NCBI GenBank assembly: GCA_002269645.1
Contig: NIVC01000773.1
Coordinates: 337,417 to 383,405, forward strand
Direction: 5' to 3'
Length of the DNA: 45,989 nucleotides
Source of the DNA: Macrostomum lignano
Lineage: Eukaryota
A model generated the notes under the pieces. It made no database searches and was not told where the DNA came from. It worked only from the letters and a program-made list of their open reading frames with translations. Numbering within the stretch: the stretch's first letter is position 1; each line of letters begins with the position of its first letter. Shown here piece by piece: positions 3,339 to 45,935 of the stretch. A program made the position numbers and the translations under genes.

Positions 3339-10731
<7,393 letters not shown>

Positions 10732-13140: not shown

Positions 13141-13618
13141 TCAGCGCGCAGCTTCAAACAGTTCGAGCTCCTCGTCCTCGGCGGCGGCTTGAACCGCCCG
13201 CCCCACCGGGAACCGCCGAGTCTCCGGCAGCTTCGCCGATGTCTGCAACACGGCGACGTAGTCGACCCCGAAGGCTCACCCGGCCGAGGTCCAGGGCGCT
13301 GAGGTGAACCTCCCAGCAGGTGCCGCCGCCGTCGCCGCTGACCTGCCGCGATGCCAGAAGCAACCGACGACCGCTGGACTGACGCGCCAGCAGCTGGACG
13401 TCCTCGCCGAACAGCTGCAGCCAGACGGTCGGCGGCCCCGGCAAGTCATCGGCCAGCGGGACGAGCCGCACTCGGTACACCGCGGCGGGCAGCAGCAGGG
13501 CTCCCGGCCAGTCGGCTTGAATCTCCAGGCAGTTGCCTGGCTGCAGGCCGCTGGCAGGTTCGGGCAGTTGCACAGCGGACTCGAAGCTGGCCCCGGTGTC
13601 CAGGTCTTGGAATGTCAG
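13141..13618 (-). CDS. PLAT-repeat gene terminal exon(s); stop at 13154 if unspliced, or at 13141 via a 37-nt intron (13243-13279) or frameshift
   Basis: Acceptor CCGCTTAG; LTFQDLDTG...; the PLAT-like C-terminus (RRFPVGR...) lies in a second frame. Confidence 0.7.
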
Positions 13619-16600
13619 CTAAGCGGTGAAATAAAAATGTTTGAAGTGTGCACGGAGGATATCATAGTAAAAATTCAATTTTTACTTCATTTTTTTCCTA
13701 CGGCTTTTCAGTACTCGTATATTTCTACTATAAGTAGAGTATTAAAGAAATTAATTATTTTTATATTTATACATGCAAAATGTTATGATTTCTACTGCTA
13801 GTAGAGTAAAATAAAAATTATTTCGTAAGTGATGGACTAAAATCTACAATGATTACAGACTTTCGTCTTGACTACTCCTAAATTTTAAGCCGCCCCCCTG
13901 ACACTGATTTTGGCACTTTATGACAATGATAATATTGGACCTCGTAACACCTCTAACACTTCTGGACCCTCTGACACTATTTGACCTTCTCTGACAGTTT
14001 GAGGACCCCCAGACACTTTTGGAGCCCCTGAAACTTTTGGACCCCCTGACACTTTTGTACCCCTGACACTTTTGGACCCCCTGACAGTTTTGGACCCCCT
14101 GACAGTTTTGGACCCCCTGACAGTTTTGGACCCCCTGACAGTTTTGGACCCCCTGACACTTTTGGACTCCACACCCAATGACCCGCAAACCTTTCTCGGT
14201 CGCCACGCGAATGCAGCGGCACCCGCAGCACCGTCGCCTCCTTCGCCATCCACAGGCAGCTCCAGACCCAGTCGGACTTTGTAAACCCCGTCGGAGCAGT
14301 CCGGCGCGTTCTCGAACTTCAGCTCGAAGTCTTCGACGCCGTCGCCGCGGAAGCCGCCCAGCCGCTGCCTGCTGGACTCGCCGTCCTCTGGCGTCACGAG
14401 CGCCGCCCAGACAGCCGGCGGCTGCTGCGACTCGACTGTCAGCTCGGACTCGATTCGAACTCGCCACCGACCGCGCGACTCTCTCGTGCCGCTGCCGCCG
14501 TTGTCCGCCTCCGGGTAGGTCGGCACCGCCAGCAGGGCGAAGCGAGTTGGCGGCCCGCCGCCCACCCGCAGCTGCGCAGGCCGGCTGCACACGAAGGCGA
14601 ACCGGTCGCGATGGTCCTGCAGCAGTCGTAGCCGCGTCACGGCCAGCGGGGTTGACGTGACGGCCTCCGCCGCCGCCGCCTCTTCAACTCCGTCGATGTC
14701 GGTGACTTCGCCTCCTTTGTCCTCGTCTTCGAAGTCTTCGCTGTCCTCCCACAGGCTGAGGGCGGCCACACGGGGCAGCTGTGGGTACCGGAAGGTGTAC
14801 AGGCAGCGCTGCCGTTGCGAATCGTTGACGTCGTCGACCTGTAGTTGGTGTCGCTTTAGCGGCGCGGCTGGCAACGAATCGGCGGTTGCCGCCGTTGCCG
14901 CGTCGTCTTTGGCGTTGGGGTGCAGCCGAACGCGAAGTCCTCGACTGGCCTGCGGGAATCCGTCACCTTGGACTGAGGAATCCCCTCGTTCGGAGACCCC
15001 AGAAAGGAAATCCAACGGGGGGGGAATCCCCCAACAGAAATTCCCTATGAAAAATTCTCCAACGGAAATCCCGTGCGAAAAATCCCCTGTGGAAAATCCC
15101 CTAACGGAAATCCCCTGTGGAAAATCCACCAACGGAAATCCCCTGTGGAAAATCCCCTAACGGAAATCCAAAGTGAAAAATCCCCCAATGAAAATCCCCT
15201 GCGGAAAATCCCCCATCGGAAATTCCTGTAGAAAATCTCCCATCGGAAATACCCTGTAGAAAACCCTCCAACGGAAATCCCCTATGGAAAATCCCCCAAC
15301 AGAAATCCCATGTGGAAAATACTCCAACGGAAATCCCCAGTGGAAAATCCCCCAACGGAAATCCCCTGTGGAAAATCCCCCAAAGGAAATCCTCTGTGGA
15401 AAATTCAAACCTGCAGTCGCTGCAGCGGCTCGGCGTGCACCTCCAGCTCGTACAGCAGGTCGCCCGGCTGCTTCTTCTCCCCATCCGAGCTCTCCGCCGA
15501 GTCCGTCAGCGTAGCCTGAGTCTGTCCGTCGCCCCAGGCGCTGTCCAGCCATCGCTGGCAGCGGAACCGCCGGCTTTCTGGTGCCCGATCGCGCCAGCTC
15601 ACGCTGACGGAGTCCAGATAGACGCCCTGGCCGCCGCCGCGCTGCTCGTGCCCGATCGTGACGGAGTGCAGGTGGCCGACGGACAGGCAGCGGACATTGC
15701 GGCTGACGGTCTGTCCGGGCAGCAGGCGCAGGTTCAGCAGGCGGCCGGGCGCCGAGGAGCCAAGATCGCCGTGCAGCACGATCCTCATCGAGGTCACCGC
15801 CGATGAGCCGCAGTTCCTGGCCGAGCCGAGCCGCAGGCTGACCCGGTAGTCAAGCGACACCGCCTGCGGCACGCCCGGCCTCGAGGCGTTGAACTCGGCC
15901 TGCTGCCCGGCCTCCAGGCTGCAGTCCAGCGGGAAGAAAAAGTCGAGCGGCTGCTCCAGATCCGAGAGCCGCAGCGAGGCCAGGTGCACCTGGTCTTCAG
16001 GCCGGTGCGAGTCCAGCTGCAGGCTGATCTTGCCGAGGTCGCCGAAGCCGCCGGAGCCGACTGAGGCGAGCTGCAGCTGCTCACCAGCGGCTGGCAGGCG
16101 GCCGGGCTCGTGCAGTCGGTGCGGCCCGCTGGTGCCGAGGCTGCCGTGCAGCGTCAGGGACAGGCAGCAGCCACCCAGATTGTCTGCGTCGCCTTTGTCG
16201 CCAGATTTTCCAGCCGACGGTGACGAAGGCGCAGGCGACGGAGTCGTCCCGGGCATCGGCGTTGTCGATGAGGTCGCGGCTGAGTGGCCGAGCCGGAGAG
16301 CCAGCCGGTAGCGGCCACTGCTGGCTGGGAAGGCGGAGGCCGCGGTCGCCGCTGCAGTGAGGGCGGCGCTTGCCGCGGTCCGTTGCGGAGGTCCCAGACG
16401 GATGTCCGGCTGGGTGGCGCTCAACCGACAGTCGGCGTCGCCGCTGACGAAGCTGAGCTCGGCGAGGTTGAACAGGCCAGGACGGACGAGCACCTGGCAA
16501 TGGGAGGCAACAGGAATTCAATGGGATGTCTTGGTGTGTGCCCGCGTCCCTTGGTACGTCTCTTGACTAGCTAGGTCTACCTGTCTCTTGAGTAGGACCC

Positions 16601-28600: not shown

Positions 28601-31600
28601 TAGTATTTCATACTCGTATACTGGGGTTTAAGAAAATAAATCCCCCATTTCAGCCACATACAGCGGCATCACCTCCCACTAAGTTTCCGGCCCCTCCACC
28701 CCTCCTACACAGTTTTGAGCTAAATTACCCCTCCGGCCTCTATAACACCGAATTTTAAGCTGTACCTAATTCTAGGGTTCAAGAATGTAAACAATAAAGA
28801 TAGAAGCAATATAATCAGTCTCTAAAATAACTCCAGTTCATGAATGACCGATCGCCAGGCTTGTAGTAAACTCGTGAAACTGCGGATCCTAAAAGTAAAG
28901 ATAAAATGGCAGTTGCGATCGAGTATGCATCGTAATATACTAATATTTAACTCACAATCTACAATCATGTCTGCGTGTTGAAGCTGAGAACATATACAGG
29001 AAGAAATTGCAGAATTGCAGAATACAGGGAATACGAGAATCGAGATAGAAGGAAATCGGATTGATATAAAAAACCAGAGAAAGATATTTTTAGTACTCAC
29101 TTGCGACTCACGCGTCCTACATCAGGCCTCCTCGGAGTCACCTGTCAGAGGAATGACAAAAAATGGCTTGCTGGATCCCTGTCCGCTCCAGCAAGATTGG
29201 CAAGCAGATTCGCAGGCAAAATCCAGCACTTTCGCTCAGGTGTGCCAGTTAGAACACCAGATGTCATCCTGTACAAGCCGATTCCCAGACGCAAAGATGG
29301 ATATGGGTTGGCGTAGATGTTGTCAACTGGGTGTAAAATCCTGCCAGTGACTTGATTAGCTTCACTTACAGCTTCGATTAGGACGCATACTTTGTCGATT
29401 ATGCAACAATTATCACCTCGCTTTGTGCTGAATTTCAACGGTGGAATTCGCTGCTCATTCAACAGAAGATCGCGAACTCTGAGCACCTGCTTAACTGAAT
29501 GCGCTGCCATGTGCCTTGTCACCTTTACGCGGCGCTTTACAGATCCAAGAAAGTTTTCGAAAGGGAAAGTCGAAAAGTTGTTTAAACTGCCTAGCTTTCG
29601 GACAAACTCATCCAAATGAAGAATAGTGTGAAGATTGAAACTTATAAACTTCTGGCCGTAAAGATGGGCAGCCCGTTCAACAAAAACTTCAATGCAAGTT
29701 TTTGCCTGCGTCCACCACTTGGAGTACCTTTCGTTGGAGTATGCGTAAATGGCGAAATGGAGGTAAAGAAAGTGGTTATACCTTTCTTCATTTAAAATGC
29801 CTTTGAAGAGGACAGGTCCTAGGTACAGCAAGTACTGTCTGAATTCAGTAGCCTTCATGTGCTTCAGTTCCAAGTCGATTTTCCGGGGTCTTCGTTGAAA
29901 GTTTGAAGGTGTCCAACCGGCAGCCATAGTAATTCGGTCGCCCAATAGGCTCATCGGACCGGGATAGACGAGACACTTCTTGCCATTAGATTTGTCGAAA
30001 AATAGGTAAAATAGCTTCCTTGTGACTCCAAGGCAGACGGCATGCTGGTAGTCAGGGGGAAAAGCATCGACAAAACTAATGTTAGGCAAATTTAGAAGGG
30101 GCGATAGAGCGATTTTTTTATTTTCCTGGTTAGACTCCTTTCCCTCTCGGTATTGTTGGCTGCTACGAGACTCCCCGACGCTCGTTGAAAATGTTACTCT
30201 GTTGTCGGTATAAGGTCCAGTAGCCCTGCAGTACATGCAACCGACGTACGACATGTGCCCTTGAGTTACTGAGACCCAGGCTCGAGCAGGCGCATCGCAA
30301 ACAAATCGGATAGTCGAGAAGCTGATGCTTAAATTTTCGATAATTTTTATGGGACCCGTAAGAAAACGTTTAGCCTCGTCGCAAAATTGTCGAAGATAAT
30401 CATTCAGAGGTGGCTTGCCACAACCAGCCCATACGGCTACTGGAAAAGGTCTGCTGAATATGCTGGGAATAGACATTAGTATGGGCCAAAGACCGAAGTG
30501 GCTTGCTCGGTACAAAGGCAAGCCGTCAAAATTAACGATGGCTTCAATTTTGTAAACCTTCTCAGTTTCACTATCGTGTTGTAGATATTCTGGCTTCATG
30601 TGCAGCTGGTTTTTGCGAAACATTAGTTCTAGATTTTTCAGAATCGAAATGTAGCGAAAATGGCCTTTTCCCATGGACTCCAATTTTTCCGTTGGATCGC
30701 CAGCATTGATGACGGCCTCAATAGAGTTGACAGACTTCGGCGCAGGCAAACCTATGTCTCTTAGACCATCAACAAGGAATTTTTTAGATCCATGACTTAG
30801 GTTGAAACAAGAAAAGTAGACTACCAGCAAGGCGAATATTTTATCTTCTAAAGAGCGGTCATCCTCTTTCTTGTCAATCTCCTCATCTTCATCGCTGCAA
30901 ACTCGCGCGAACTCGTCAAAATCAGGATAGCTGCCATTGTCGTTGCCAAGATCTGGATCCGTACCTTCATTGACTTCTGCTACAGAGGACTCCGAAGCGA
31001 TGAAACCGGCGACTCTCCAGAATCATCTGCTTCGACTACTTTTCTTTTTTTCTCTTGCAGTGCGATGTCTTCCAAAGCTTCTTGTTCTCCTTCCATGAAC
31101 AAGCCCAGCAAATCCTTATTTGCTTGTCGCCTCAATTGCCTTGTCATTGTTTTCGTCCGAATCAGACTTTGATGATAGTTGACTGTTGTAATAATAATAA
31201 AGTAATTACTACGATTGCTTATTTCGTATTAAAGAAAGGATATGAACAAAAGCTGGGAAGAATTGAAAACTATTCCTTTGGGGGTTTGTGCGCGCTGATT
31301 GGACAGGTATGGATGCGGGGACGGTAGGGCCAATGAAATTGGAAAAGCCATTGCGGCCTTTTTCATTCGAAGAACTATAGAAGACAATTGCTTCTAGAAG
31401 CAACCTAAACCACTGAATCATTAAATAAGCATAAACTATAGTGTGAGCTCCAAACTCTTGCTTTATTTGGTACTCAGTTTTGCACTAGCATAGTTAGTCT
31501 GCATGCTACAATGAAGTTTTTAGTGATCTTTAAAGACGACCGTCAAATTGTTGAGGTCTCGGAAAGCGAAGTGAAGCTTCCTGAAGGCTTTCAAAACCTT

Positions 31601-34600: not shown

Positions 34601-37600
34601 GGATGATGGACAATTTAAAATCTTCTAATTATGAGAGCACGTATTTTACGAGTAAATGCTGTCACAAAATGATTTTAAAACTGACATTCTTTCAACACCT
34701 TTGTTGCCAAAAACTTAACTATTTTTCGTTCTAATATTGTGTTTTAATATCAGTTCCATTTAACTTCGCTAAATAAATTCAAATTTCATTACATTTAAGT
34801 TTCTTATTCGATTTCATTCATAGACTCAAACTAATTTTCTAAAAAACTGCAAAAAAATTCACAAAAGGCAAACTTCGTAAGCAGGTAGCAGCAAGGTTGT
34901 TTAAATTTATAATGGAAGAGACAATTGCTTAAAAAAATCAGATAGCTCTGAAAATTATTTGGAAATAAATTCAATTTTGAAACAACCAGAAAGCTAGGCT
35001 GCTGCCAGAGCAAAATATATCAATAAAAGCCCTGCATACTACTGTTAGTAGAGTAAACCAATTCTTGCCTTAATTTATTGGGCAGTCCACCGGGCGCCGG
35101 GTATAAGGCCGGCGCCCCGACTGGACAAAGAGTACGCCCCGCTACCGGCCACAGGCCACCGGGCGCCGCGGTCTGCGCACCCTTGGGCGTACCAGAATTT
35201 CCCACTGGGGAGGGGAGAGAGAGGGGAGATGGGGGAGAGGGGGAGAGGGGAGAGAGGAGTTGGATGAGAGAGAGGAAGAGAGAGCGGGGGTTATAGGGGT
35301 AGAGGGCGAGTTGGGGAAGAACGAGAGAAGAGAAACAGAGATGGCAAAAGCAGGATGGAGAGAGAGAGAGAAGGGAAGAACGAGGAAGAGAGGGGAGAGG
35401 GAAACAAAAAAGTCCTGAGCAGGACTCAGCTTATTATGGAGGTTCATGGAGTCTACGGTGCCTCCCAGCATCCCACATCAGACACCTTTGAGAGGAAGTC
35501 CATTTCCGTTCTAAACCCGGCAATACTACTCACTCAAATAAAGTCAGCCAACCTTTTTACGGGCATTGCAAAACATTTGTAACAAATGAACAACAAAATT
35601 TGATGAATGCATTTTATGAGCTGGGCGGACTTGTGGAAGCTGCTGCTGGATTGAAACAATTGTATTATATACCCGATTTCTTTTCGAGTGAGTGCGAACT
35701 CTGAAAGTATGGCATGTACGTGTAAATTTTTACCTGAAATGGGATACTCACATCCTTAGTTGTTTCGAGTGATGCTTATCAACAAATTCTCCACATCCCC
35801 GCTAGTCCCCCCAAATCCCAACTAATTCCCCAATATCCCAACTAATTCCCCATATCCCAACTAATCCCCCCCAAATCCCAACTAACCCCCCCCCAAATCC
35901 CCCCTAATCCCAACTAACCCCCCAAATCCCAGATAAATGCTCCCAAGTCCCAACTAATTCCCGAGTCCCAAATGATCCCAAGTACAAAATAACCCCTAAA
36001 ATTCCAAATCGCCAAGGATTCCCAAATGATTTCCTGCATCCTAACTGATCCCCAATTCCAAAAAGATCCCCAAACGCCAATGTCCCCAGCCGCAGGCAGG
36101 GCAGGAATTCGGGCCTCACCGTCGGGCCGCAGAGTTCGCTCGGCTCTGCCGTCCGGCTCCCCCGAGGCCGCAGCCAATCACAGCAGATGAAGTCGGTGAC
36201 GGAGAAGCCCGGACCCAGCCTGGCAGCAATGAGGCGGTCGCAGTTCCAGGCTCCCGAGGCTTCGCGACTGTCAGCGGAGATTCGGCACAGCCTGAGCTGA
36301 CCCAGATCCACTGCGCTTAGCTGCACTTCGAGTACCTGTCAATCAGATTTATAGGCATATTAGGTAAATAAACTGATTGAATGACATCATCTTATGATTT
36401 TTTTGGTACAGGCAAGACCGAAAAGATATTTAAGCTAAATTCGTAGCTTAATTATTCCCTAATTCCTCTATCAAGAAATTGCCTAATTTCAATCGGGTAA
36501 TTCCCCAATTCCAATCGAGGGATTCCCAATTTCCAAACTGGGGATTTCCCAAATTCCAATCTGGGGATTTCCCAAATTCCAATCTGGGGATTTCCCAAAT
36601 TCCAATCGAGGGATTCCCAAATTCCAATCGGGAGATTCCCAAATTCCAATCTGGGGATTTCCCAAATTCCAATATGGAGATTTCCCAAATTCCAATCGGA
36701 GGATTCCCAAATTCCAATCGAGGGATTCCCAAATTCCAATCGAGGGATTTCCATATTCCAATCGAGGGATTCCCAAATTCCAATCGGGGGATTCCCAAAT
36801 TCCAATCTGGGGATTTCCCAAATTCCAATCTGGGGATTTCCCAAATTCCAATCGGAGGATTCCCAAATTCCAATCGAGGGATTCCCAAATTCCAATCGAG
36901 GGATTTCCATATTCAAATCGAGGGATTCCCAAATTCCAATCTGGGGATTTCCCAAATTCCAATCGAGTGATTCCCAAATTCCAATCGGGAGATTCCTAAA
37001 TTCCAGTCGGGGAATTCTCTAATTCCAATCGGGGGATCCCCAAATTCCAATCCGGGAATTCCCAAATTCCAATCGGGGGATCCCCAAATTCCAATCCGGG
37101 AATTCCCAAATTCCAATCGGGGGATCCCCAAATTCCAATCCGGGAATTCCCTAATTCCACAAAACCTCTCCGTCGACGCTGCCGAGGCCCCCAGCCGGCA
37201 AACTGATGGCCCGTCGCCCGGTGTCGCCCAGGTCGCCGACCAGCTCCAGCCGGAGGCAACCTTGCAGTGGACCGCCGTCAGCCGATGTCGAGGCCTTTAG
37301 CGTCACCAGTCGCAGCTGATAGTCCGCCACCGCCTGTCGGCCGGCCGGCACCTCCAGGCTCGCCTGCGCGCTCGCCGCGTCTCCAGGCGCCGACGCCGCC
37401 GGCCAGAAAAGTCGAGCCGCGGCCGGCAGACGAAACTCTATCGATAGCGACGCTTTCGCCTGGTTGGTCGTTTGAAGCGCCGGTTTCCATAGCAACAGAC
37501 GTCGCAGCGTCGGAGGCGGTTGCCATGTCGCCGCCAGCCGAGGATCCCGCGGGATCAGGTCGAGACGCAGCTTCCACAGCTCCGGTCTGGACGCCGCCTC

Positions 37601-40600
37601 GTCAGCCGACGCGGACTTCAAGGCCAGTCGAAGCCGCACCTCGCCGCCAGACTGAGGCAAAATTGTCGCCGAGGCAGTCGCTGCCGCGTCGCCCGAGCCG
37701 AAGCAGACGGTGGCCTCCATGCTGGCCAAGTTTTGGCCGACGCTGCTTTTCTTGGCATCGAAGTCAGCGAAGCCCAGCAACCATTCGTCTGGGCCGAGAG
37801 CTGGCGGTGGCGGCGGCGGCGGCGTCTGGGGCTTCGAAGGCAGTGGTGGCGGTGGCGACTCCGACTTCAGTGGCTGCGGTGGCGGCGGCAGCGGCGCCTT
37901 TGGAGGAGGCTTCGGGCTGCCGACTGTGCATGTGTGAAAATTATTATGGAGAATTTAATGAATTTTTCTATTACAGTGTTGTGATGGGGCTCAAGGGCTC
38001 GGTCCTTTCGTGCCCCTTTCCCAGACCCGGGTTCGCGCACTGAACCTGGCTGCGGTCCTCCACTGACACGCGTACGACGCGGTGTCCGTCAGGACCAGGC
38101 TGCTCGAGCGTACGACGCACGACAGCCTACAGACTCGCGTACGACGCAGAGCTGCTTGGGTTGGGACCGGCGTACGACGCACTTAATCCCTCTAAGGTGC
38201 CTAGTACAGATGCAGACCCAAATGACTTGCAAATTGGAAGGCTTACCGGCGCGATTTCAGTCGTACAACTCGGGAACAGCGCCGACAGAGCAGTGGGAGT
38301 ATCGATAGTCTTTAATTGTATTTGTAGGACAATTCGGACACTTAATAGCAACCAACGCTGGCAAAATCACCGGAGAGCCACGAAGATGACGAGAATGGGG
38401 TCTCAAGGGGGTCAGAATAAATAGGCAGCAAACTGGGGGTTGAGGGCGCGGGATAAAGGCAGAAAAGAGGCTTAGACATCAGCATAGAAAAAACATGAGC
38501 CGTACCAGCCAATCGCCGGGGCGCAGCACGGCAGACTGGGACTGGCAGCCAATCACAAACAGGGGCGGGGCAGCAAAGCTAACAAAAGAATGGGGCGGGG
38601 GCGCACGGGGCGCACACAGAGCAAGGGGGGTTTGACTAAACGGAAAAGGCCTAGGCAGAGAGGGGGAGGATACGCACGCGCAGAAGTGAAAGGGGGTTGA
38701 GTCAGAAAATATCTGAGGAGGGGGGGGGAAAGATGCCGGCCAGACTGGCCCGGCGTAGAATAGTGCACTCAACTCAAGTTACAATAACACATTCATGACA
38801 ACAGCATTTTTGGTGCTCCCTACTCAGTCACTGACTCTTCCTACTCAGCTACTAACTCTCCCTACTCAGCTATTGACTCTCCCTACTCAGCTACCGACTC
38901 TCCCTACTCAGCTACTGACTCTCCCTACTCAGCTACTGACTCTCCCTACTCAGCTATTGACTCTCCCTACTCAGCTACTGACTCTCCCTACTCAGCTATT
39001 GACTCTTCCTACTCAGCTATTGACTCTCCCTACTCAGCTATTGACTCTTCCTACTCAGCTATTGACTCTCCCTACTCAGCTATTGACTCTCCCTACTCAG
39101 CTACTGACTCTCCCGACTCAGCTATTGACTCTCCCTACTCAGCTATTGACTCTCCCTACTCAGCTATTGACTCTCCCTACTCAGCTACTGACTCTCCCGA
39201 CTCAGCTATTGACTCTCCCTACTCAGCTCCCAGTCAGCTCCCAGTGGCTATTCCACATTGCTCACAGGTCAAAACTTCCGGATAGAGCCGAACATTCGGT
39301 TCCGCGTCATCGCTCACTGGTACCGCTCGACCGTCCGGCTCGAAGCCGAGCCACAGGCCGCTGGAGCAGCTGCGCAGGGTGACGAAAGCGCCTGTTTTGA
39401 ATTTTTCCACTTTGAAATGGCAGCTGACGTCCCCGGTGCCCTGAAAATAAAAAATTAAAAAATGCGCGCTCTGATAGCAACCTCATGGCAACGCAGTAGC
39501 AATAGCATAGCAACAGCATAGCAAAAGCATTGCAACAGCATAGCAACAGCTAGCAACAGCATAGTAACAGCATAGCAACAGCATAGCAACAGCATAGCAA
39601 CAACGTAGCAACAGCATAGCAACAGCATAGCAACAGCATAGCAACCAACCAGGCAGTCGAACTCGCCGTCCCGCAGCCGCAGAAACTGCTCCGGCAGCAG
39701 CACCGATTCGAACATCCGCAGCGCTGTCCGGCCCTCGCCGTCATCGTAGCCTTCGCCCTCGTCATCGGGCAGTCGGCGCACCCTGAAGAGCGCCACCCGG
39801 CCTCGCCGACCAGCCCCGTTCAGGCGGCGGCCGTCTTGCTCAACCGCCAGCGCCTGCTCCCTACTGGTTGCCATGGTAACCACAGAGCCTTGCCGGAACC
39901 GACCGCGGCAGTGCGGAACCAGCGGCTGCGGCAGCGAAGTCGCCGCTGCGGCTTTCTTCGACGTCGACAACGTCGACTGGCGACCGTCGGCATTGAGCAG
40001 GAGCTGCTGGGACGGCCGCCTGGCCGATGCGACAACAACGGAGCGCGGCAGCAGCTCGTGAGGCCGCAGGCGGAACTCGCATTGGGCACCGGATTTGCCC
40101 TGGTTCGATTTGTTTTTTTTCGTTTTTTTGTTATAATTATATTTTGTTATAATTATATTTTGTTATAATTATATTTTGTTATAATTATATTTTGTTATAA
40201 TTATATTTTGTTATAATTATATTTTGTTATAATTATATTTTGTTATAATTATATTTTGTTATAATTATACTTTGTTATAATTAGGTCCCGCATGCGGCTG
40301 GTGCGGGTTTACCGGTAGTCTGATGGATTATTAAAACAAACTCTAACAAAAATAGCAAAACGAGGCCGGAGGCGAAGGTTTGTTTCTAAGAAATCAGGTC
40401 ACTTTCTATATCGAATGATTGTGACACTATGACATATTAGGAGAAGATAAGATATTAGACATAAAACAATGGAAATGAAAGATATTAAATGATAGATTGC
40501 CGATTAGAGAAAAAGAGATGGAAGATGAAGAGGCTAGAGATTAGAGAATAGATATCAGAGACTAGAGAAGACAGATTAGAGATTAGAGACTAGAGATTAG

Positions 40601-42725
40601 AGTGAGATATAAATGAGGAGAGAAGAGAAATAAAGTATATTTTATTGCATCATGTAACTACAGGCTGAGTGCAAAGCTACAGTGTAACATTGTTGGGCAA
40701 AATGGAATTGTTTATTTTTGCTATCGGTAAATTCGATAAAAAACTTCAAGGGTCAGTGCAATAATTTCTAATGTTATTTAGTTTGTGGTGGTCGAACAAA
40801 ACGGATCATGTTTCTAAGAAATCATAAAACCTGTACCTGAACCTGATGCTCGGTCATGAGAAACTGAAAACCGAGCGATGATGTCTTGTGAGACTGAAAC
40901 AGTCTTAAGAGTACAGCAGTATTTATTGATCTCAGTCAATACGGTGCCGCCTTACCTGGCCTTTTATGAGACCGTTCGGGCTGAGCCCCAGGTAGCATTT
41001 TGGAGCGCCGAGGCAGCGAAACATCCGCGACCCATCTGGCTTTGCCAGCACGGTGAAGAAGGCTGAAATGCATTGTTTATGACCGCATATTCCTTAGGTA
41101 GGTTCCATGAGGATTTTAGTTGCCATGCCGTTTCTTATACTGGTTACTATGCCGTTTCTAACTGGTTACTATGCCGTTGCTAACTGGTTGCTATGCCGTT
41201 GCTAACTGGTTGCTATGCCGTTGCTAACTGGTTGCTATGCCGTTGCTAACTGGTTACTATGCCTTTGCTAACTGGTTGCTATGCCATTGCTAACTGGTTA
41301 CTATGCCGTTGCTAACTGGTTGCTATGCCGTTGCCAAGTGGTTGTTATGCCGTTGCTAGCATGTTGCTGTGTCGTTGCTAACTGGTTGCTATGCCGATTC
41401 TTATACCGGTTGCTATGCCGTTGCCAACCAGTTGTTTTGCCGTAGCTAATTGGTTGCTCGTTGCTACCTAGTTGCTATGTTGTTGTTAAGACATCGTGCA
41501 AGATCTAAATCTCACACATTGGATTCCCCTCGGCCTCCGATTCGCTCAAATCGTTCGTCCTTGCCGCGTCCACGCTGGTGTCCGAGTTCACTCGGACAGG
41601 CCGGCCAGTGGCCGGGCAGTAGAGCTGCACGGTGCAGTTGTTCTCGAACATCCAGGCGATGCCCTGCCAGGACGACCGCTCCAGCTGCTGCAGCGCCGGC
41701 TGCTCGTCCGGCGGGACACCGGCTGATGCGGCGGCGGCCGCCGACTGTCTGCGCAGCGGCCGGAGGTCCCTGGCCAGTCGACCGTCGTCCTCGGCGGAGT
41801 CCAGCCACCTGGATTGGAGCGACGGATTAGCGAGGGTTACTCTACTTAACTCTACTCTACACAACTCTGATCTATTATACTCCACTCTACTCCACTATAC
41901 TCTACTACACTCTACTCCACTCTACTCCACTATACTCTACTACACTCTACTCCACTCTACTACACTCTACTCCACTCTACTTCACTCTACTCCACTCGAC
42001 TCCACTCGACTCTACTACATTCTACTCAACTCTATTCTACTCTACTCTACTTTACTCTACTCTACTCTACTGCATAATTTAATCTAATATTGCTCTATCT
42101 ACTACATTAAATCTATTCAAATTTTCTGTTTACGTCCCTAATGTCAGCCACTAAGCCCTCTTCTCCAGATCGTCTACTCAAACTCTCGCCTCTACTCTAA
42201 GTAGTGTTTTATTACTCTTATCTACAGCCTCTCCATCGCAGAACCAAATCCCGCCCACCTGTAGCACAGAAACTCCGCAGCTTCATCCGGTTGGGACTCC
42301 GGCCGCACGGCCACCTTGTCCAGGTACCAGCCGTGTCCGGGCTCTCTGGCGTCGTGGCAGACGCTCAGCTTGGTCAGGCGGCCCAGGTGCACAGCCTCGA
42401 GTGAGAATTTGTCCACCTTGAAGTTGAAAATTAATCATTAAAGTGAAATCTGCCTGCAGCGGCACAAAGATAAGCTACAAAGAGCTGCATCAAAGCATAA
42501 AAATTAGTCAGCTGCCCGCACCTGTCCTTTCATAAACGGTGCAACTTGAAAATCTTTATCTTCAACGCGATCGAAAAGCAGTTCTCGGGGTCCGGTGTCG
42601 CCAAGGTCTCCGTGAAGGGTGACGGTGACTGCGGCTGAGGTGCCAGCGTTGTACAGGTCACCTGTGTGCACCTCCAGAGTGTACCGCTCCACTGCAATTG
42701 GTGATGGAATAGGTGCCCCGCTATT

Positions 42726-42772
<47 letters not shown>

Positions 42773-44503
42773 AGCAATGATGGCAGGCATTAATGTTTCG
42801 TCTTCCCGCGCCTCTCCCTGGGGATTTACTCGGCACGTCCTTTTTCCCGCACTCCCAGGTCGCGCACGAGCCCGCCTCCATGCAGCCTCTTCGCCTCCTA
42901 CAACGGAAGCCCCACTCAGCCTAACGAGCTTCTTCTCCATCCTATCGTCCCATTTTTAATCCTTAGTTCCCCTTTTCGGCGTTCTTTCCCTTAGTCACTC
43001 CCCAAAAAATTGATCCACATTGCTTAGCAACCCGAGACAGAGCAAAACAGCGGCTCCGGGAGGCGGTATTTTCTGTCAAATTTCCATCCGTGATGCGCCT
43101 TCAGTGCCCATTTTGTTGTTAAATGCATCGCAATTAAATTCGGGAGAGTCAAGCTGTTGAAGACTGGCTTTGCACTGTCTATGGCCCAAAGGGGTCTGTG
43201 GCCAGTTGGAGAATTTTGGTCGCGCAATGAATCAGTGCTTTGCACAGCTATGGCAGATGTCATCAGGCAAGCATGGAAGACTCTTTCCTGGGGGGCCTTT
43301 GACCACCTTGACCTCCATTGGATGACCTCCATTGCAGTTGGGCGTTATCTGAGTGGAGCCAGGCACTGCACTTTTCATTTTCACTTCAGCTTGATCGACA
43401 GCTTTAATGTAATTTTCATTACTCTTACGACTAAAAGGTCGGGGGTTCGATTCTCAACCCACTCGGAACAATTTGTGTCCTTGAGCAAGACGCTTGACTC
43501 TGCATTGTTTCAGTTCACCCAGCTATAAAATGGGTGCCAGCATTAGCTGGGGTAATTGAGGGTGTGTGGCGACCCCCCAGTCCTTGGACTGAACAGCCGT
43601 ACGCAGCCTCCCACTGTACAAAACGCTAGAAGAAAACGCTAGACTTAAGTAGAAGTCATGGCAAACTTTAGACAGACCTGGCAACACAGGCCGCCCGTCC
43701 CGACCCAAGGCGGGCAGCTCCTTGCACATCATGGCGCGGGCCAGCGAGCAATTGAAGTCGAACCGAAGCTCCTCGCCCGTGTCGGCGTCGGTCATGACGA
43801 GACGCCCGACTGGCAGATCGGCGGCCGACGCCGCGGCCACCGTGGCAGCCGCTGAACTCCGAGGTCGGGCCTCCAGGCTCAGCCGCACTTTCAGAATCTC
43901 ACCAATTTGCCCCGTGTGCACCTGTGATTAAATAATAATCACTCATAATCATAAAAATCATTTATCGCTATTCGGACTGTTCGCTAAGTAAAATAATCTT
44001 TGATCCAATGTGCAGCGGAATTTACAGTCGATAAACTCTGTCCCTAATGTACACCTGCCCGATGACTCATTCCCCACCCGATAAACTCTGTCCCTAATGT
44101 ACACCTGGCCGATGACTCATTCCCCACCCGATAAACTCTGTCCCTAATGTACACCTGCCCGATGACTCATTCACCTCAGAATCATCCTTCAAGTAAAATT
44201 TTTGTCCTAAAGTATCAACTTGCATCTTCATGTACCTGAGCAGGATTCAAGTGTCTATCACAAATGTACAAATATAAGAATTTACTGAAATTTCTACCTC
44301 AAAATCTGACTCTGCCTCATCAATGAGGGCTTGAGAGCGAAGCAGCGGCAGCGGGCCTGAGCAGCCCTGCCTGCCGTACACGGTGAGAAAGAGGCGACGG
44401 GAGGAACTCGCGGCTGTCGAACTTTCATGGCCGACGCCCGGCGTGTCGATCTGAACTCGCCAGTGGCCACTGGGGGTTGTTGATGACTCTTTCAGTTCAG
44501 AGA
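13141..44503 (-). CDS. Multi-PLAT/LH2-repeat protein with FGF/fascin-like beta-trefoil and Pro-rich linker (LOXHD1 / RP1-long-isoform-like); 5'-incomplete; at least 20 exons, about 2570 aa in window
   Basis: One canonical PLAT ([36 protein letters not shown]...[22 protein letters not shown]...GWYLDKVAV...[18 protein letters not shown]) and about a dozen degenerate ones ([41 protein letters not shown]). GT-AG exon chain is phase-consistent except across the transposon-containing intron. Confidence 0.8.
13950..14170 (+). repeat. 18-bp minisatellite (TTTTGGACCCCCTGACAG)
   Basis: Direct reading; intronic. Confidence 0.92.
14191..14949 (-). CDS. PLAT-repeat gene exon
   Basis: Acceptor TTCCCGCAG (nearest phase-0 site), donor GTTTGC; 759 nt. 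Confidence 0.72.
15008..15400 (+). repeat. Degenerate minisatellite (AACGGAAATCCCCTGTGGAAAATCCCC)
   Basis: Fills most of intron 14950-15410. Confidence 0.9.
15411..16493 (-). CDS. PLAT-repeat gene exon
   Basis: Acceptor TTGCCAG, donor GTTTGA; 1083 nt, phase 0/0; [14 protein letters not shown]...VYLDSVSV...FRCQRWLDS. Confidence 0.85.
16580..16797 (+). repeat. 20-bp minisatellite (GAGTAGGACCCCTGTCTCTT)
   Basis: Direct reading; intronic. Confidence 0.95.
16974..17795 (-). CDS. PLAT-repeat gene exon
   Basis: Acceptor CTCTTCCAG, donor GTAAGT; 822 nt, phase 0/0. Confidence 0.85.
17841..18665 (+). repeat. 29-bp minisatellite (CAATGGACAGGTGCTCAGATTCCAATGAT)
   Basis: About 28 copies filling intron 17796-18719. 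Confidence 0.95.
18720..19334 (-). CDS. PLAT-repeat gene exon
   Basis: Acceptor TTTTCAG, donor GTGAGA; 615 nt, phase 0/0; [17 protein letters not shown]...VHGERGNTG...FPSGRWLE. Confidence 0.88.
19375..19698 (+). repeat. 20-bp minisatellite (CTCTCTCACGCTAGCCCTGA)
   Basis: Direct reading; intronic. Confidence 0.95.
19778..20334 (-). CDS. PLAT-repeat gene exon
   Basis: Phase 1 to 0; within ORF 19706-20365; VTYRVSI...LGELNKIRV...WIFDLVTV...LYGERGHT. Confidence 0.85.
20445..20675 (+). repeat. Degenerate minisatellite (GGGATTCCCCATTCCTATTTAGGT)
   Basis: Direct reading; intronic. Confidence 0.85.
20744..20867 (-). CDS. PLAT-repeat gene exon
   Basis: Acceptor CTTCACAG, donor GTAAAA; ITLEHL...CPVNRWFSR; phase 0 to 1. 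Confidence 0.85.
20951..21204 (-). CDS. PLAT-repeat gene exon
   Basis: Phase 1 to 0; NWQLTLSSG...[10 protein letters not shown]...IGELYKLRL...WFVKE; donor GTGAGT. Confidence 0.82.
21618..21944. mobile_element. TIR element (MITE) with internal telomere-like (CTAACC)n repeats
   Basis: 51-bp TIRs 21623-21673 / 21890-21940 (2 mismatches); flanks TTTGCTAT / TTTGCGAT as near-perfect 8-bp TSD. Confidence 0.8.
24238..24405 (+). repeat. 17-bp minisatellite (CAGCCAGTGACAATTGA)
   Basis: Direct reading; intronic. Confidence 0.92.
24462..24546 (-). CDS. PLAT-repeat gene exon (tentative acceptor)
   Basis: Branch-like CTAAT plus AAG acceptor; strong donor G|GTGAGC; [28 protein letters not shown]; phase 0 to 1. 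Confidence 0.55.
24783..24916 (-). CDS. PLAT-repeat gene exon (tentative boundaries)
   Basis: Acceptor TCCCCAG after a very long pyrimidine tract; phase 1 to 0; donor GTACTT is weak. Confidence 0.5.
24920..25300 (+). repeat. GA-rich polypurine tract (left flank of EnSpm; continues at 35210-35405)
   Basis: Direct reading. Confidence 0.95.
26607..26721 (-). mobile_element. Diverged, truncated inverted copy of the same MITE
   Basis: Reverse complement (cagtgcagcgcaagcagaaattt...gggggcggattctgaagggtaaag...cgcttggtccccc) aligns by eye with 27057-27170. Confidence 0.7.
27057..27255. mobile_element. Non-autonomous hAT-type MITE nested in the EnSpm element
   Basis: 15-bp TIRs CAGTAGCGCAACCAG / CTGGTTGCGCCACTG (1 mismatch); perfect 8-bp TSD GGAGCAAG (27049-27056, 27256-27263). 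Confidence 0.85.
27380..27456 (-). mobile_element. hAT-Charlie-like terminal fragment
   Basis: Minus strand reads CAGGGGTCAGCAAACTCCAGCCCACGGGCCACATGCGGCCCGC, typical of Charlie-group termini; second end and TSD not found. Confidence 0.5.
29145..31147 (-). CDS. EnSpm/CMC-type DDE transposase (main ORF 29145-30830; probable N-terminus from ATG 31147 separated by one frameshift near 30990-31015)
   Basis: Motifs NFDGLP...WPIL, CDAPARA, HxxYxGCxxC, DYQH.VCLGV, HTILHL...[14 protein letters not shown]; upstream frame carries KKRK NLS-like and acidic segments. Confidence 0.88.
31148..31510. promoter_or_regulatory. Candidate bidirectional promoter of the transposon genes
   Basis: 363 bp between divergent ATGs; ATTGG 31298-31302 and CCAAT 31330-31334 in opposite orientation, with GC-rich elements between and nearby. 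Confidence 0.4.
32270..32550 (+). repeat. Coding low-complexity repeat (GAAGCTGAGGYG)n encoding (EAEV/EAEA)n
   Basis: 6/12-bp units, frame preserved, inside accessory-gene exon 3. Confidence 0.9.
33535..34220 (+). repeat. 54-bp coding tandem repeat, about 13 copies ([18 protein letters not shown])
   Basis: Directly visible 54-bp period, in frame with the accessory-gene exon. Confidence 0.92.
35673..35700 (-). CDS. Candidate 28-nt microexon of PLAT-repeat gene
   Basis: Acceptor TACTTTCAG, donor GTATAT; phase 0 to 1 would fix the phase gap between exons 36120 and 24916. No homology support. Confidence 0.3.
35806..35990 (+). repeat. Degenerate C-rich repeat (CCCAACTAATYCCC)
   Basis: Direct reading; intronic. 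Confidence 0.8.
36120..36335 (-). CDS. PLAT-repeat gene exon
   Basis: Acceptor TTGACAG, donor GTGAGG; phase 0/0; [14 protein letters not shown]...WNCDRL...FICCDWL. Confidence 0.8.
36470..37155 (+). repeat. 20-21-bp minisatellite (GGGATTCCCAAATTCCAATC)
   Basis: Fills intron 36336-37165. Confidence 0.95.
37166..37923 (-). CDS. PLAT-repeat gene exon (poly-Pro linker plus degenerate PLAT)
   Basis: Acceptor TGCACAG; phase 1 to 0; [13 protein letters not shown]... in frame with ORF 37151-37780; LVGDLGDTG. Confidence 0.8.
37977..38789 (-). mobile_element. Solo-LTR-like segment
   Basis: TG...CA bounded (TGTTATTGTAAC...CATCACAACA on minus); two ATTGG boxes, GC boxes, TATTTAT and ATTAAA in U3-R-U5-like order; no TSD found. 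Confidence 0.4.
38815..39240 (+). repeat. 21-bp minisatellite (CTCTCCCTACTCAGCTATTGA)
   Basis: About 20 copies. Confidence 0.95.
39266..39440 (-). CDS. PLAT-repeat gene exon (beta-trefoil end)
   Basis: Acceptor TTTATTTTCAG, donor GTGAGC; [24 protein letters not shown]...LWLGFEPDG...VRLYPEVL. Confidence 0.85.
39470..39645 (+). repeat. 11-bp minisatellite (AGCAACAGCAT)
   Basis: Direct reading; intronic. Confidence 0.9.
39650..40099 (-). CDS. PLAT-repeat gene exon (beta-trefoil)
   Basis: 450 nt, phase 0/0; [13 protein letters not shown]...[24 protein letters not shown]. Confidence 0.8.
40128..40283 (+). repeat. 16-bp AT-rich minisatellite (TTGTTATAATTATATT)
   Basis: About 10 near-identical copies. 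Confidence 0.95.
40956..41062 (-). CDS. PLAT-repeat gene exon (beta-trefoil), absent from ORF track
   Basis: Acceptor CATTTCAG, donor GTAAGG; 107 nt, phase 1 to 0; [35 protein letters not shown]; resolves the phase between its neighbours. Confidence 0.85.
41120..41480 (+). repeat. 22-bp minisatellite (GTTGCTAACTGGTTGCTATGCC)
   Basis: Direct reading; intronic. Confidence 0.9.
41516..41808 (-). CDS. PLAT-repeat gene exon (PLAT end plus start of beta-trefoil)
   Basis: Phase 2 to 1; [16 protein letters not shown]...[30 protein letters not shown]; donor GTGAGA. Confidence 0.85.
41838..42072 (+). repeat. (CTCTA/CTACT)n pentanucleotide repeat
   Basis: Direct reading. Confidence 0.92.
42259..42416 (-). 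CDS. PLAT-repeat gene exon
   Basis: Phase 0 to 2; [14 protein letters not shown]...WYLDKV; donor GTGGGC. Confidence 0.88.
42522..42691 (-). CDS. PLAT-repeat gene exon
   Basis: Acceptor TTGCAG, donor GTGCGG; phase 1 to 0; [10 protein letters not shown]...GDLGDTG. Confidence 0.88.
42729..42768 (+). repeat. Short (CAGA)n
   Basis: Direct reading. Confidence 0.95.
43400..43600 (+). mobile_element. CORE/MIR-like tRNA SINE
   Basis: B box GGGTTCGATTC (about 43443) followed by TGTGTCCTTGAGCAAGACGCTT and CAGCTATAAAATGGG, resembling the CORE-SINE consensus. Confidence 0.55.
43678..43921 (-). CDS. PLAT-repeat gene exon
   Basis: Acceptor TCACAG, donor GTCTGT; phase 0 to 1; [14 protein letters not shown]...CKELP. 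Confidence 0.82.
44030..44172 (+). repeat. 50-bp tandem repeat, about 2.8 copies
   Basis: GATAAACTCTG starts at 44030, 44080, 44130. Confidence 0.92.
44298..44503 (-). CDS. PLAT-repeat gene exon (most 5' found in window)
   Basis: Acceptor TTGTCAG, donor GTAGAA; phase 1 to 0; WRVQIDT...[17 protein letters not shown]. Confidence 0.72.
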
Positions 44504-44513
44504 CTGACAAATT

Positions 44514-45935
44514 CACACCGGTGACTCTGACACTCACACCGGTGACACTGACACACTCACACCGGTGACTCTGACACACTCACACCGGTGACTCTGTCAC
44601 ACTCACACCGGTGACTCTGACACACTCACACTGGTGTCTCTGACACATTCACACCGGTGACTCTGACACACTCACACCGGTGACTCTGACACACTCACAC
44701 CGGTGACTCTGACACACTCACACCGGTGACTCTGACTCACTCACACTGGTGTCTCTGACACACTCACACCGGTGACTCTGACACACTCACACCGATGATA
44801 CTGACACACTCACACCGGTGACTCTGACACTCACACCGGTGAAACTGTCACACTCACACCGGTGACTCTGACTCACTCACACTGGTGACTCTGACTCACT
44901 CACACTGGTGTCTCTGACACACTCACACCGGTGACTCTGATACTCACACCGGTGACTCTGATTCACTCACACTGGTGTCTCTGACACATTCACACCGGTG
45001 ACTCTGACACACTCACACCGGTGACTCTGACACACTCACACCGGTGACTCTGTCACACTCACACCGGTGACTCTGACACTCACACCGGTGACTCTGACTC
45101 ACTCACACTGGTGTCTCTGACACACTCACACCGGTGACTCTGTCACACTCACACCAGTGACTCTGACACTCACACCGGTGACTCTGACTCACTCACACTG
45201 GTGTCTCTGACACACTCACACCGGTGACTCTGATACTCACACCGGTGACTCTGACTCACTCACACTGGTGACTCTGACTCACTTACACTGGTGTCTCTGA
45301 CACACTCACACCGGTGACTCTGATACTCACACCGGTGACTCTGATTCACATCACACTGTGTCTCTGACACATTCACACCGGTGACTCTGACACACTCACA
45401 CCGGTGACTCTGACACACTCACACCGGTGACTCTGTCACACTCACACCGGTGACTCTGACACTCACACCGGTGACTCTGACTCACTCACACTGGTGTCTC
45501 TGACACACTCACACCGGTGACTCTGTCACACTCACACCAGTGACTCTGACACTCACACCGGTGACTCTGACTCACTCACACTGGTGTCTCTGACACACTC
45601 ACACCGGTGACTCTGATACTCACACCGGTGACTCTGACTCACTCACACCGGTGACTCTGACTCACTCACACTGGTGTCTCTGACACACTCACACCGGTGA
45701 CTCTGATACTTACACCGGTGACTCTGACTCACTCACACCGGTGACTCTGACACACTCACATCGGTGACTGACACACTCACACCGGTGACTCTGACACACT
45801 CACATCGGTGACTCTGACACACTCACACCGGTGACTCTGACACACTCACACCGGTGACTCTGACACACTCACACCGGTGACTCTGCACACTCACACCGGT
45901 GACTCTGACACACTCACACTGGGGGACTGACACAC
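44514..45935 (+). repeat. 21-23-bp minisatellite (CACACTCACACCGGTGACTCTGA), about 60 copies
   Basis: Direct reading; palindromic CACCGGTG core. Confidence 0.97.

Follow-up and report, generated by a model that had tools for sequence, protein, structure and literature searches.

RP1 is a microtubule-associated protein of the photoreceptor axoneme, and its mammalian form, of about 2150 amino acids, consists of a pair of DCX domains followed by a long low-complexity exon, with no PLAT domain and no trefoil. LOXHD1, a hair-cell protein with 15 PLAT domains, is located in stereocilia, and PLAT itself is a beta-sandwich through which lipoxygenases, lipases, polycystin-1 and LOXHD1 contact membranes or membrane proteins. 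RP1L1 is, like RP1, a microtubule-associated protein of the doublecortin family, and PMC7600334 places it in the photoreceptor axoneme. In the flatworm Macrostomum lignano, a stretch of 45,989 nucleotides (assembly GCA_002269645.1, contig NIVC01000773.1, positions 337,417 to 383,405; hereafter the window) very probably contains most of the orthologue of an old animal gene that encodes a giant cytoplasmic DCX-PLAT-trefoil protein, and the identity and architecture of this protein are regarded as highly likely. The flatworm protein shares the N-terminal tandem DCX domains of RP1 and RP1L1, but its DCX pair is followed by two PLAT domains, two trefoils and a PLAT array in place of the long low-complexity exon of mammalian RP1.

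Trefoil module and PLAT domains

A protein search returned two M. lignano entries in UniProt, A0A1I8JCT0 (P0001; annotated as "Oxygen-regulated protein 1" and bearing the Pfam domains DCX and PLAT) and A0A1I8FS84 (P0002). A further M. lignano copy, GenBank PAA87100.1 (P0158; 2256 amino acids), is 95-100% identical with the same exon structure and maps onto the window from 44468 down to 16102 by tblastn. The composition of the window is eukaryotic, with GC-rich exons separated by repeat-filled introns. Exon borders were read directly from the DNA, and their AG and GT dinucleotides were then verified by script; eight minus-strand exons, designated A to H, are all bounded by an AG acceptor and a GT donor, and when spliced they form one uninterrupted frame of 776 amino acids (42691 to 36120). 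This splice model agrees with PAA87100.1 and with an alignment of 12 orthologous trefoil modules including that of the flatworm (A1), of which the second half (A2) and the first half (A3) were also used separately.

Sequence profiles support the prediction that the segment after the second PLAT domain (PLAT-2) forms two tandem FGF-type beta-trefoils, homologous to the FGF trefoils and to each other. The module comprises 297 amino acids and starts at 41675, and six strand-turn units are visible in A1. Trefoil 1 would occupy approximately 41675-39911 in three exons and trefoil 2 39910-39267 in two, and the flatworm trefoils hold lineage-specific inserts, namely an acidic run and an Ala/Ser-rich loop. 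The orthologue modules, obtained by an exhaustive search with A0A1I8JCT0, align across the whole 297 amino acids at 25-38% identity to the flatworm sequence. When the window sequence alone was compared with the PDB, the symmetric Symfoil designs derived from FGF-1 were matched at E 1.2e-6. Including the 11 orthologues made the trefoil signal decisive. Profile searches of the PDB at E up to 10 yielded 132 chains for A1 and 123 for A2, and the results described here come from the best 60 of each; among the A1 matches listed, all are FGFs or FGF-derived trefoil designs, including Symfoil (E 2.5e-18), FGF1 (about 1e-8), the FGF2 consensus (E 1.2e-7, profile positions 18-135) and FGF8 (E 3.7e-7, positions 16-135), the last of which spans essentially the full FGF core. 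The second half alone matched full-length Symfoil at E 1.8e-12 to 1e-8 and FGF1 at E 1e-4, and a comparison of A3 with A2 by hhalign gave a probability of 98.6% and E 1.3e-15 over 113 columns. A single trefoil with a long insert was rejected because each half aligns with a complete FGF or Symfoil chain and also with the other half. At the level of Pfam, the FGF family (PF00167, cut-off 24 bits) was matched by 10 of the 12 members of A1 (best E 9.5e-17), and whole-protein scores lie above the cut-off in Bufo (43.6 bits) and amphioxus (26.2 bits), so that the homology holds at the family-profile level. The remaining weak Pfam matches of A1 members are mostly to trefoil families (Fascin, RicinB_lectin_2, IL1 and AbfB), and the others are single and weak (E 0.08-0.22).

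Two PLAT domains precede the trefoils (44469-43678 and 42691-42259). Within the window, Pfam gives PLAT matches at E 7e-15 and 9.5e-5, and a purpose-built profile gives about 10-11. After the trefoils, at least 8-9 PLATs are recognisable between 37300 and 15500, with 2-3 degenerate candidates extending to about 13150. The preliminary description, made from the DNA letters, had proposed a giant protein of PLAT repeats between 37166 and 42691 with one embedded FGF/fascin-like trefoil. Both limits coincide exactly with exon borders, and all the peptide strings quoted there occur in the spliced frame. The possibility that the segment is not a beta-trefoil was checked, and the profiles point to a trefoil of FGF type; the proposed fold type therefore stands, while the single copy is replaced by two copies in tandem with six units. 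The placement of the best-conserved PLAT before the trefoils agrees with exons A and B (Pfam PLAT E 7e-15), and the predicted poly-Pro linker after them was found at 37923-37784. The characterization of the PLAT tail as highly diverged is fair, because Pfam recognises just three PLATs in PAA87100.1. On the other hand, the tail is not greatly expanded as had been suggested, since in the orthologues 14-18 PLATs follow the trefoils, more than in the flatworm, where the domains are also degenerate.

By profile, the flatworm module belongs to the same beta-trefoil sequence family as the FGFs, and its cytoplasmic setting resembles that of FGF11-14 (FHF), which are intracellular. It differs from the FGFs in that two tandem copies, scoring below the Pfam cut-off, are carried inside a giant protein. 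With PLATs on either side, the module is embedded in a protein longer than 2250 amino acids and is not a free-standing unit of growth-factor size. A growth-factor role is unlikely, because no signal peptide is evident by eye in the hydrophilic N-terminus of A0A1I8JCT0, and nothing here suggests receptor signalling. FGF13 binds and stabilises microtubules. Fascin, like the flatworm protein, is a cytoskeletal protein with tandem trefoils, but it has four where the flatworm has two, and the flatworm trefoils are closer in sequence to FGF than to fascin; the Fascin family (PF06268) matched the window protein at E 0.23, and actin bundling is not indicated. FLJ46154, which presumably corresponds to DCDC1/DCDC5, likewise combines membership of the DCX family with a beta-trefoil. 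According to its description, this protein carries a ricin domain (PMC1550402), and it is set apart from the flatworm protein by this ricin-type trefoil, by a different order of DCX repeat types and, to judge from that paper, by the lack of a PLAT array. According to PMC4696496, fascin binds microtubules directly.

These comparisons bear on an alternative in which the trefoil pair is a lectin of ricin type or an actin-bundling module of fascin type, with the protein linking microtubules to glycans or actin. Such a module would fit the weak Pfam matches to Fascin in 3 of 12 members (best E 0.0015) and to RicinB_lectin_2 in 2 of 12 (best E 0.0078), and also the tandem arrangement, which is the fascin design, and the ricin domain of another DCX-family protein. 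This alternative is nevertheless considered unlikely: FGF is by far the best family and exceeds its cut-off in orthologues, and no lectin or fascin chain is present among the PDB matches listed (best 60 of 132 and of 123). The sequence family does not fix the ligand of the FGF-type trefoils, which might still be actin or a lipid.

DCX head, conservation and relation to RP1 and LOXHD1

The N-terminal part of the protein was traced through the M. lignano gene models. Residues 277-740 of A0A1I8JCT0 are 100% identical to window exons by tblastn, and its residues 1-276, which contain two DCX domains, have no counterpart within the window. Residues 26-282 align to the doublecortin chain 4atu_I, solved on microtubules, at E 2e-20, and PAA87100.1 also begins with two DCX domains (Pfam DCX E 5.8e-30). 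The preliminary description had predicted DCX domains past the right edge of the window, and at the level of gene models they are present in both proteins.

The flatworm protein is collinear over residues 26-600 with the proteins that NCBI names RP1 in Bufo, Bombina and Protopterus. The Bufo bufo "oxygen-regulated protein 1" (2823 amino acids, with 2 DCX, 12 PLAT and the FGF match noted above) is an extended RP1 isoform of the kind that had been invoked in the preliminary description. Over 271 residues, its identity to the N-terminus of human RP1 is 51%, a value that is approximate because the human sequence used was itself approximate, and this alignment stops just where PLAT-1 starts. The earlier reading of an RP1-type protein is supported by the DCX-DCX head and by the collinearity with proteins named RP1. 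A putative orthology to RP1 itself, and not to DCX, DCLK, DCDC2 or RP1L1, is suggested by this collinearity and by database names rather than by a tree.

Conservation was surveyed among the proteins retrieved in the analysis. The domain order DCX-DCX-PLAT-PLAT-trefoil-trefoil-(PLAT)n recurs from jellyfish to amphibians in the following groups.

Cnidaria: Sanderia (jellyfish, P0083)
Flatworms: Echinostoma, Calicophoron, Dicrocoelium and Taenia solium (the last named "Oxygen-regulated protein 1")
Molluscs: Physella and Lottia
Echinoderms and hemichordates: Lytechinus and Saccoglossus (fragments)
Invertebrate chordates: Ciona and Branchiostoma (3437 amino acids, 19 PLAT)
Jawless and cartilaginous fish: Lampetra, Callorhinchus and Pristiophorus
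Lungfish and amphibians: Protopterus, Bombina and Bufo (all named "oxygen-regulated protein 1")

Every trefoil protein with a complete N-terminus has DCX, that of the jellyfish Sanderia among them, and nearly all of those with upstream sequence have two PLATs before the trefoils, one trematode model having three. A 647-amino-acid product encoded on a contig of 2043 nucleotides (P0049) runs from DCX-DCX-PLAT-PLAT into the start of trefoil 1; because this contig is essentially intron-free, it argues for a genuine DCX-PLAT fusion transcript in at least one species. In database annotation, the amphibian and lungfish proteins are the long form of RP1 and the invertebrate proteins are "LOXHD1-like". 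GenBank and UniProt already list the gene and its orthologues, with names assigned automatically, and Pfam would report FGF for the vertebrate entries. A literature search, which did not cover subscription journals, found no paper in which PLAT or FGF-like domains are described for RP1 or any DCX protein; the one related item was the mention of DCX combined with a ricin domain in PMC1550402. The gene is visible in databases but uncharacterised; the present analysis adds that the trefoils stand in tandem and that the domain order is strict as far back as cnidarians, and it corrects two mis-spliced UniProt models.

Several points weigh against the proposed architecture and orthology. The window sequence alone scores under the Pfam FGF cut-off (E 0.009-0.016, 15.6-16.4 bits), and the trefoil fold, although supported, is predicted from sequence profiles. 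The DCX exons lie outside the window, and in M. lignano they appear to be tied to the window exons through gene models. As only three PLATs of PAA87100.1 are recognised by Pfam, the degenerate tail is also to be weighed here, and part of it may have lost its original function. Nematode relatives in the survey set keep DCX and PLAT with no trefoil detected, which indicates that the trefoils are dispensable in some lineages.

LOXHD1 and the flatworm protein have in common long arrays of tandem PLAT/LH2 domains of two alternating types, and the flatworm PLAT repeats match true LOXHD1 of Mustela (P0009) and sea urchin (P0006) strongly. A protein composed of PLAT repeats only is not what was found, since DCX and two trefoils are present in the flatworm. 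The Mustela protein has neither a DCX head nor a trefoil module, and the trefoil profile gave no match in it, in agreement with the earlier statement that the trefoil is foreign to canonical vertebrate LOXHD1. The locus could still be imagined as a plain, PLAT-only LOXHD1 orthologue whose DCX head is a separate neighbouring gene fused by gene predictors. PLAT repeats make up the largest part of the protein, and "lipoxygenase homology domain-containing protein 1-like" is the database name of its relatives in amphioxus, snail, acorn worm, shark and lamprey. Such a fusion is highly improbable, however, given that the DCX-to-PLAT junction was predicted independently in more than 10 species by different pipelines and lies within the intron-free 2-kb contig of P0049. 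In Bufo RP1, moreover, the RP1-type N-terminus (recognised with the approximate human sequence) runs collinearly into PLAT-1. The preliminary description had named a LOXHD1 without DCX upstream as an outcome that would contradict it; as to the DCX part, DCX lies upstream in the gene models.

Gene structure, copies and neighbouring features

The exons of the DCX-PLAT-trefoil gene were assigned in the window as follows, in the order of transcription.

44298..44469, minus strand: first-half exon of PLAT-1; 100% tblastn match to A0A1I8JCT0 residues 277-334, PLAT profile match
43678..43921, minus strand: second-half exon of PLAT-1; A0A1I8JCT0 residues 333-414 (tblastn), PLAT profile match
42522..42691, minus strand: exon A, encoding the first half of PLAT-2 (best conserved of the PLATs); Pfam PLAT E 7e-15 with exon B, borders read
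42259..42416, minus strand: exon B, second half of PLAT-2; Pfam PLAT with exon A, PLAT profile, borders read
41516..41808, minus strand: exon C, tail of PLAT-2, Ala/Pro-rich spacer, invariant W..W lead-in and first strands of trefoil 1; borders and alignment
40956..41062, minus strand: exon D, end of unit 1 and unit 2 of trefoil 1; present in PAA87100.1, aligned in all orthologues, AG/GT
39650..40099, minus strand: exon E, unit 3 of trefoil 1 (to 39911) and units 4-5 of trefoil 2 (from 39910), with a flatworm-specific acidic insert; borders, alignment and profiles
39266..39440, minus strand: exon F, end of unit 5 and unit 6 of trefoil 2, with the terminal conserved YPEV(L/I) motif; Symfoil match at residues 258-290
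37166..37923, minus strand: exon G, poly-Pro linker (37923-37784), degenerate PLAT-like segment and, from about 37321, the start of a further PLAT (first half); tblastn of PAA87100.1, borders read
36120..36335, minus strand: exon H, second half of the PLAT begun in exon G; PLAT profile E 1.2e-6, borders read
24884-24801, 24191-24126 and 23775-23704, minus strand: three small linker exons; tblastn of PAA87100.1 residues 1232-1319
21205-20745, 20335-19778, 19337-18717, 17798-16965 and 16517-15408, minus strand: PLAT array with about 7-8 recognisable diverged PLATs; Pfam, profile and tblastn
13157..15156, minus strand: probable additional exons carrying 2-3 strongly degenerate PLAT-like repeats; open frames, pattern by eye

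The PLAT split between exons G and H covers approximately 37321-37166 and 36335-36165. Exon G alone gave no Pfam match, and its middle segment is possibly a degenerate PLAT, as judged from an alignment by eye. The open frames at 13157-15156 likewise gave no Pfam match. An 11-kb intron (36119-24885) separates exon H from the small linker exons.

The two UniProt models are mis-spliced between 41574 and 39392. Both A0A1I8JCT0 and A0A1I8FS84 omit the exon at 41062-40956 and shorten exons E and F via internal sites, by which strands of both trefoils are deleted; A0A1I8JCT0 in addition uses an earlier donor in exon C, after 41574. Skipping of exon D as genuine alternative splicing was judged unlikely, because core strands would be lost and all orthologues conserve the exon. 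In PAA87100.1, the fault lies at 16517-16102: the exon at 16517-15408 is read in the wrong frame over its last ~130 residues, whereas the frame that encodes PLAT is open. For the end of exon H (36120-36177) the models differ, as A0A1I8FS84 keeps the frame ...SELCGPT with the donor GTGAGG at 36119, whereas PAA87100.1 shifts to another frame.

The genome of M. lignano holds at least two copies of the gene, 95-98% identical. That the window copy is a decaying duplicate in a polyploid genome, yielding no functional protein, has very little likelihood: this duplication, the strongly degenerate PLAT tail and introns full of minisatellites, one of them with a transposon-like open reading frame, could be taken as signs of decay, but the spliced frame A-H is open for 776 amino acids, all matched exons are free of stops, and of the 297 residues of the trefoil module only about 5 are changed relative to the other copy, against an identity of about 94.5% in the linker exon, a pattern expected under constraint.

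Nearly every intron between 13956 and 45919 of the window is largely or wholly its own minisatellite with units of 10-29 bp, and the unit sequences vary between introns. Examples of these arrays are the following.

44504-45919: minisatellite, 23 bp x 63
41119-41479: minisatellite, 22 bp
39474-39645: minisatellite, 11 bp, essentially the entire intron
38816-39228: minisatellite, 21 bp
36478-37159: minisatellite, 22 bp
19376-19698: minisatellite, 20 bp
17840-18657: minisatellite, 29 bp
16580-16797: minisatellite, 20 bp
15080-15404: minisatellite, 28 bp

Inside the 11-kb intron, an intact open reading frame of 625 amino acids is present on the minus strand (29148-31022). It gave no Pfam match at E up to 1, and its appearance is that of a gene carried by a transposon, from a family that is either undescribed or highly diverged. 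On the plus strand, a convergent neighbour gene (3339-7905) encodes an EF-hand repeat protein orthologous to EFCAB6, with matches to Pfam EF-hand families and to the EFCAB6 chains 9cpc and 7rro of the PDB (E about 1e-66). EFCAB6 is an inner protein of axonemal doublet microtubules, so that a second cilium-type gene stands beside the DCX-PLAT gene. At 7985-8410, a repeat palindrome consists of 12 copies of ATCATAAACCCGAAAT followed by 12 copies of the reverse complement, flanked at a distance by (ACAG)66 and (TCTG)159 (7066-7329 and 8999-9634).

Possible role as a tether and its significance

The protein is probably associated with cilia. A mechanism in which it acts as a tether is proposed tentatively, as the simplest reading, at a little under an even chance. 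The DCX pair would attach to a microtubule lattice, that of the ciliary axoneme being the most likely, in the way that RP1 and RP1L1 do in photoreceptors. The PLAT array, arranged as beads on a string, could then reach the membrane or membrane proteins, as has been proposed for LOXHD1 in stereocilia. Between the DCX head and this array, the trefoil pair may provide an extra docking module for tubulin, actin, phosphoinositide or a partner protein, and precedents for a trefoil on the cytoskeleton would be FGF13, fascin and the ricin-type trefoil of FLJ46154. A bolder reading, which is rather doubtful, holds that the trefoil pair, present from cnidarians to vertebrates, is the closest intracellular relative of the FGF growth factors and possibly their source in evolution, or else an unrecognised tubulin- or membrane-binding module, and that the short mammalian RP1 was truncated from an ancestral axoneme-to-membrane tether with kinship to LOXHD1.

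In humans, RP1 is a blindness gene and LOXHD1 a deafness gene, and the mechanisms of both are only partly understood. The gene family described here unites an RP1-type DCX head and a LOXHD1-type PLAT array, with an FGF-like trefoil pair between them. If the long form is ancestral, a microtubule anchor joined to a membrane-reaching chain of PLAT domains would be a common logic of sensory and motile cilia, and M. lignano, as a laboratory flatworm amenable to RNA interference, would offer a tractable invertebrate model in which to study it.

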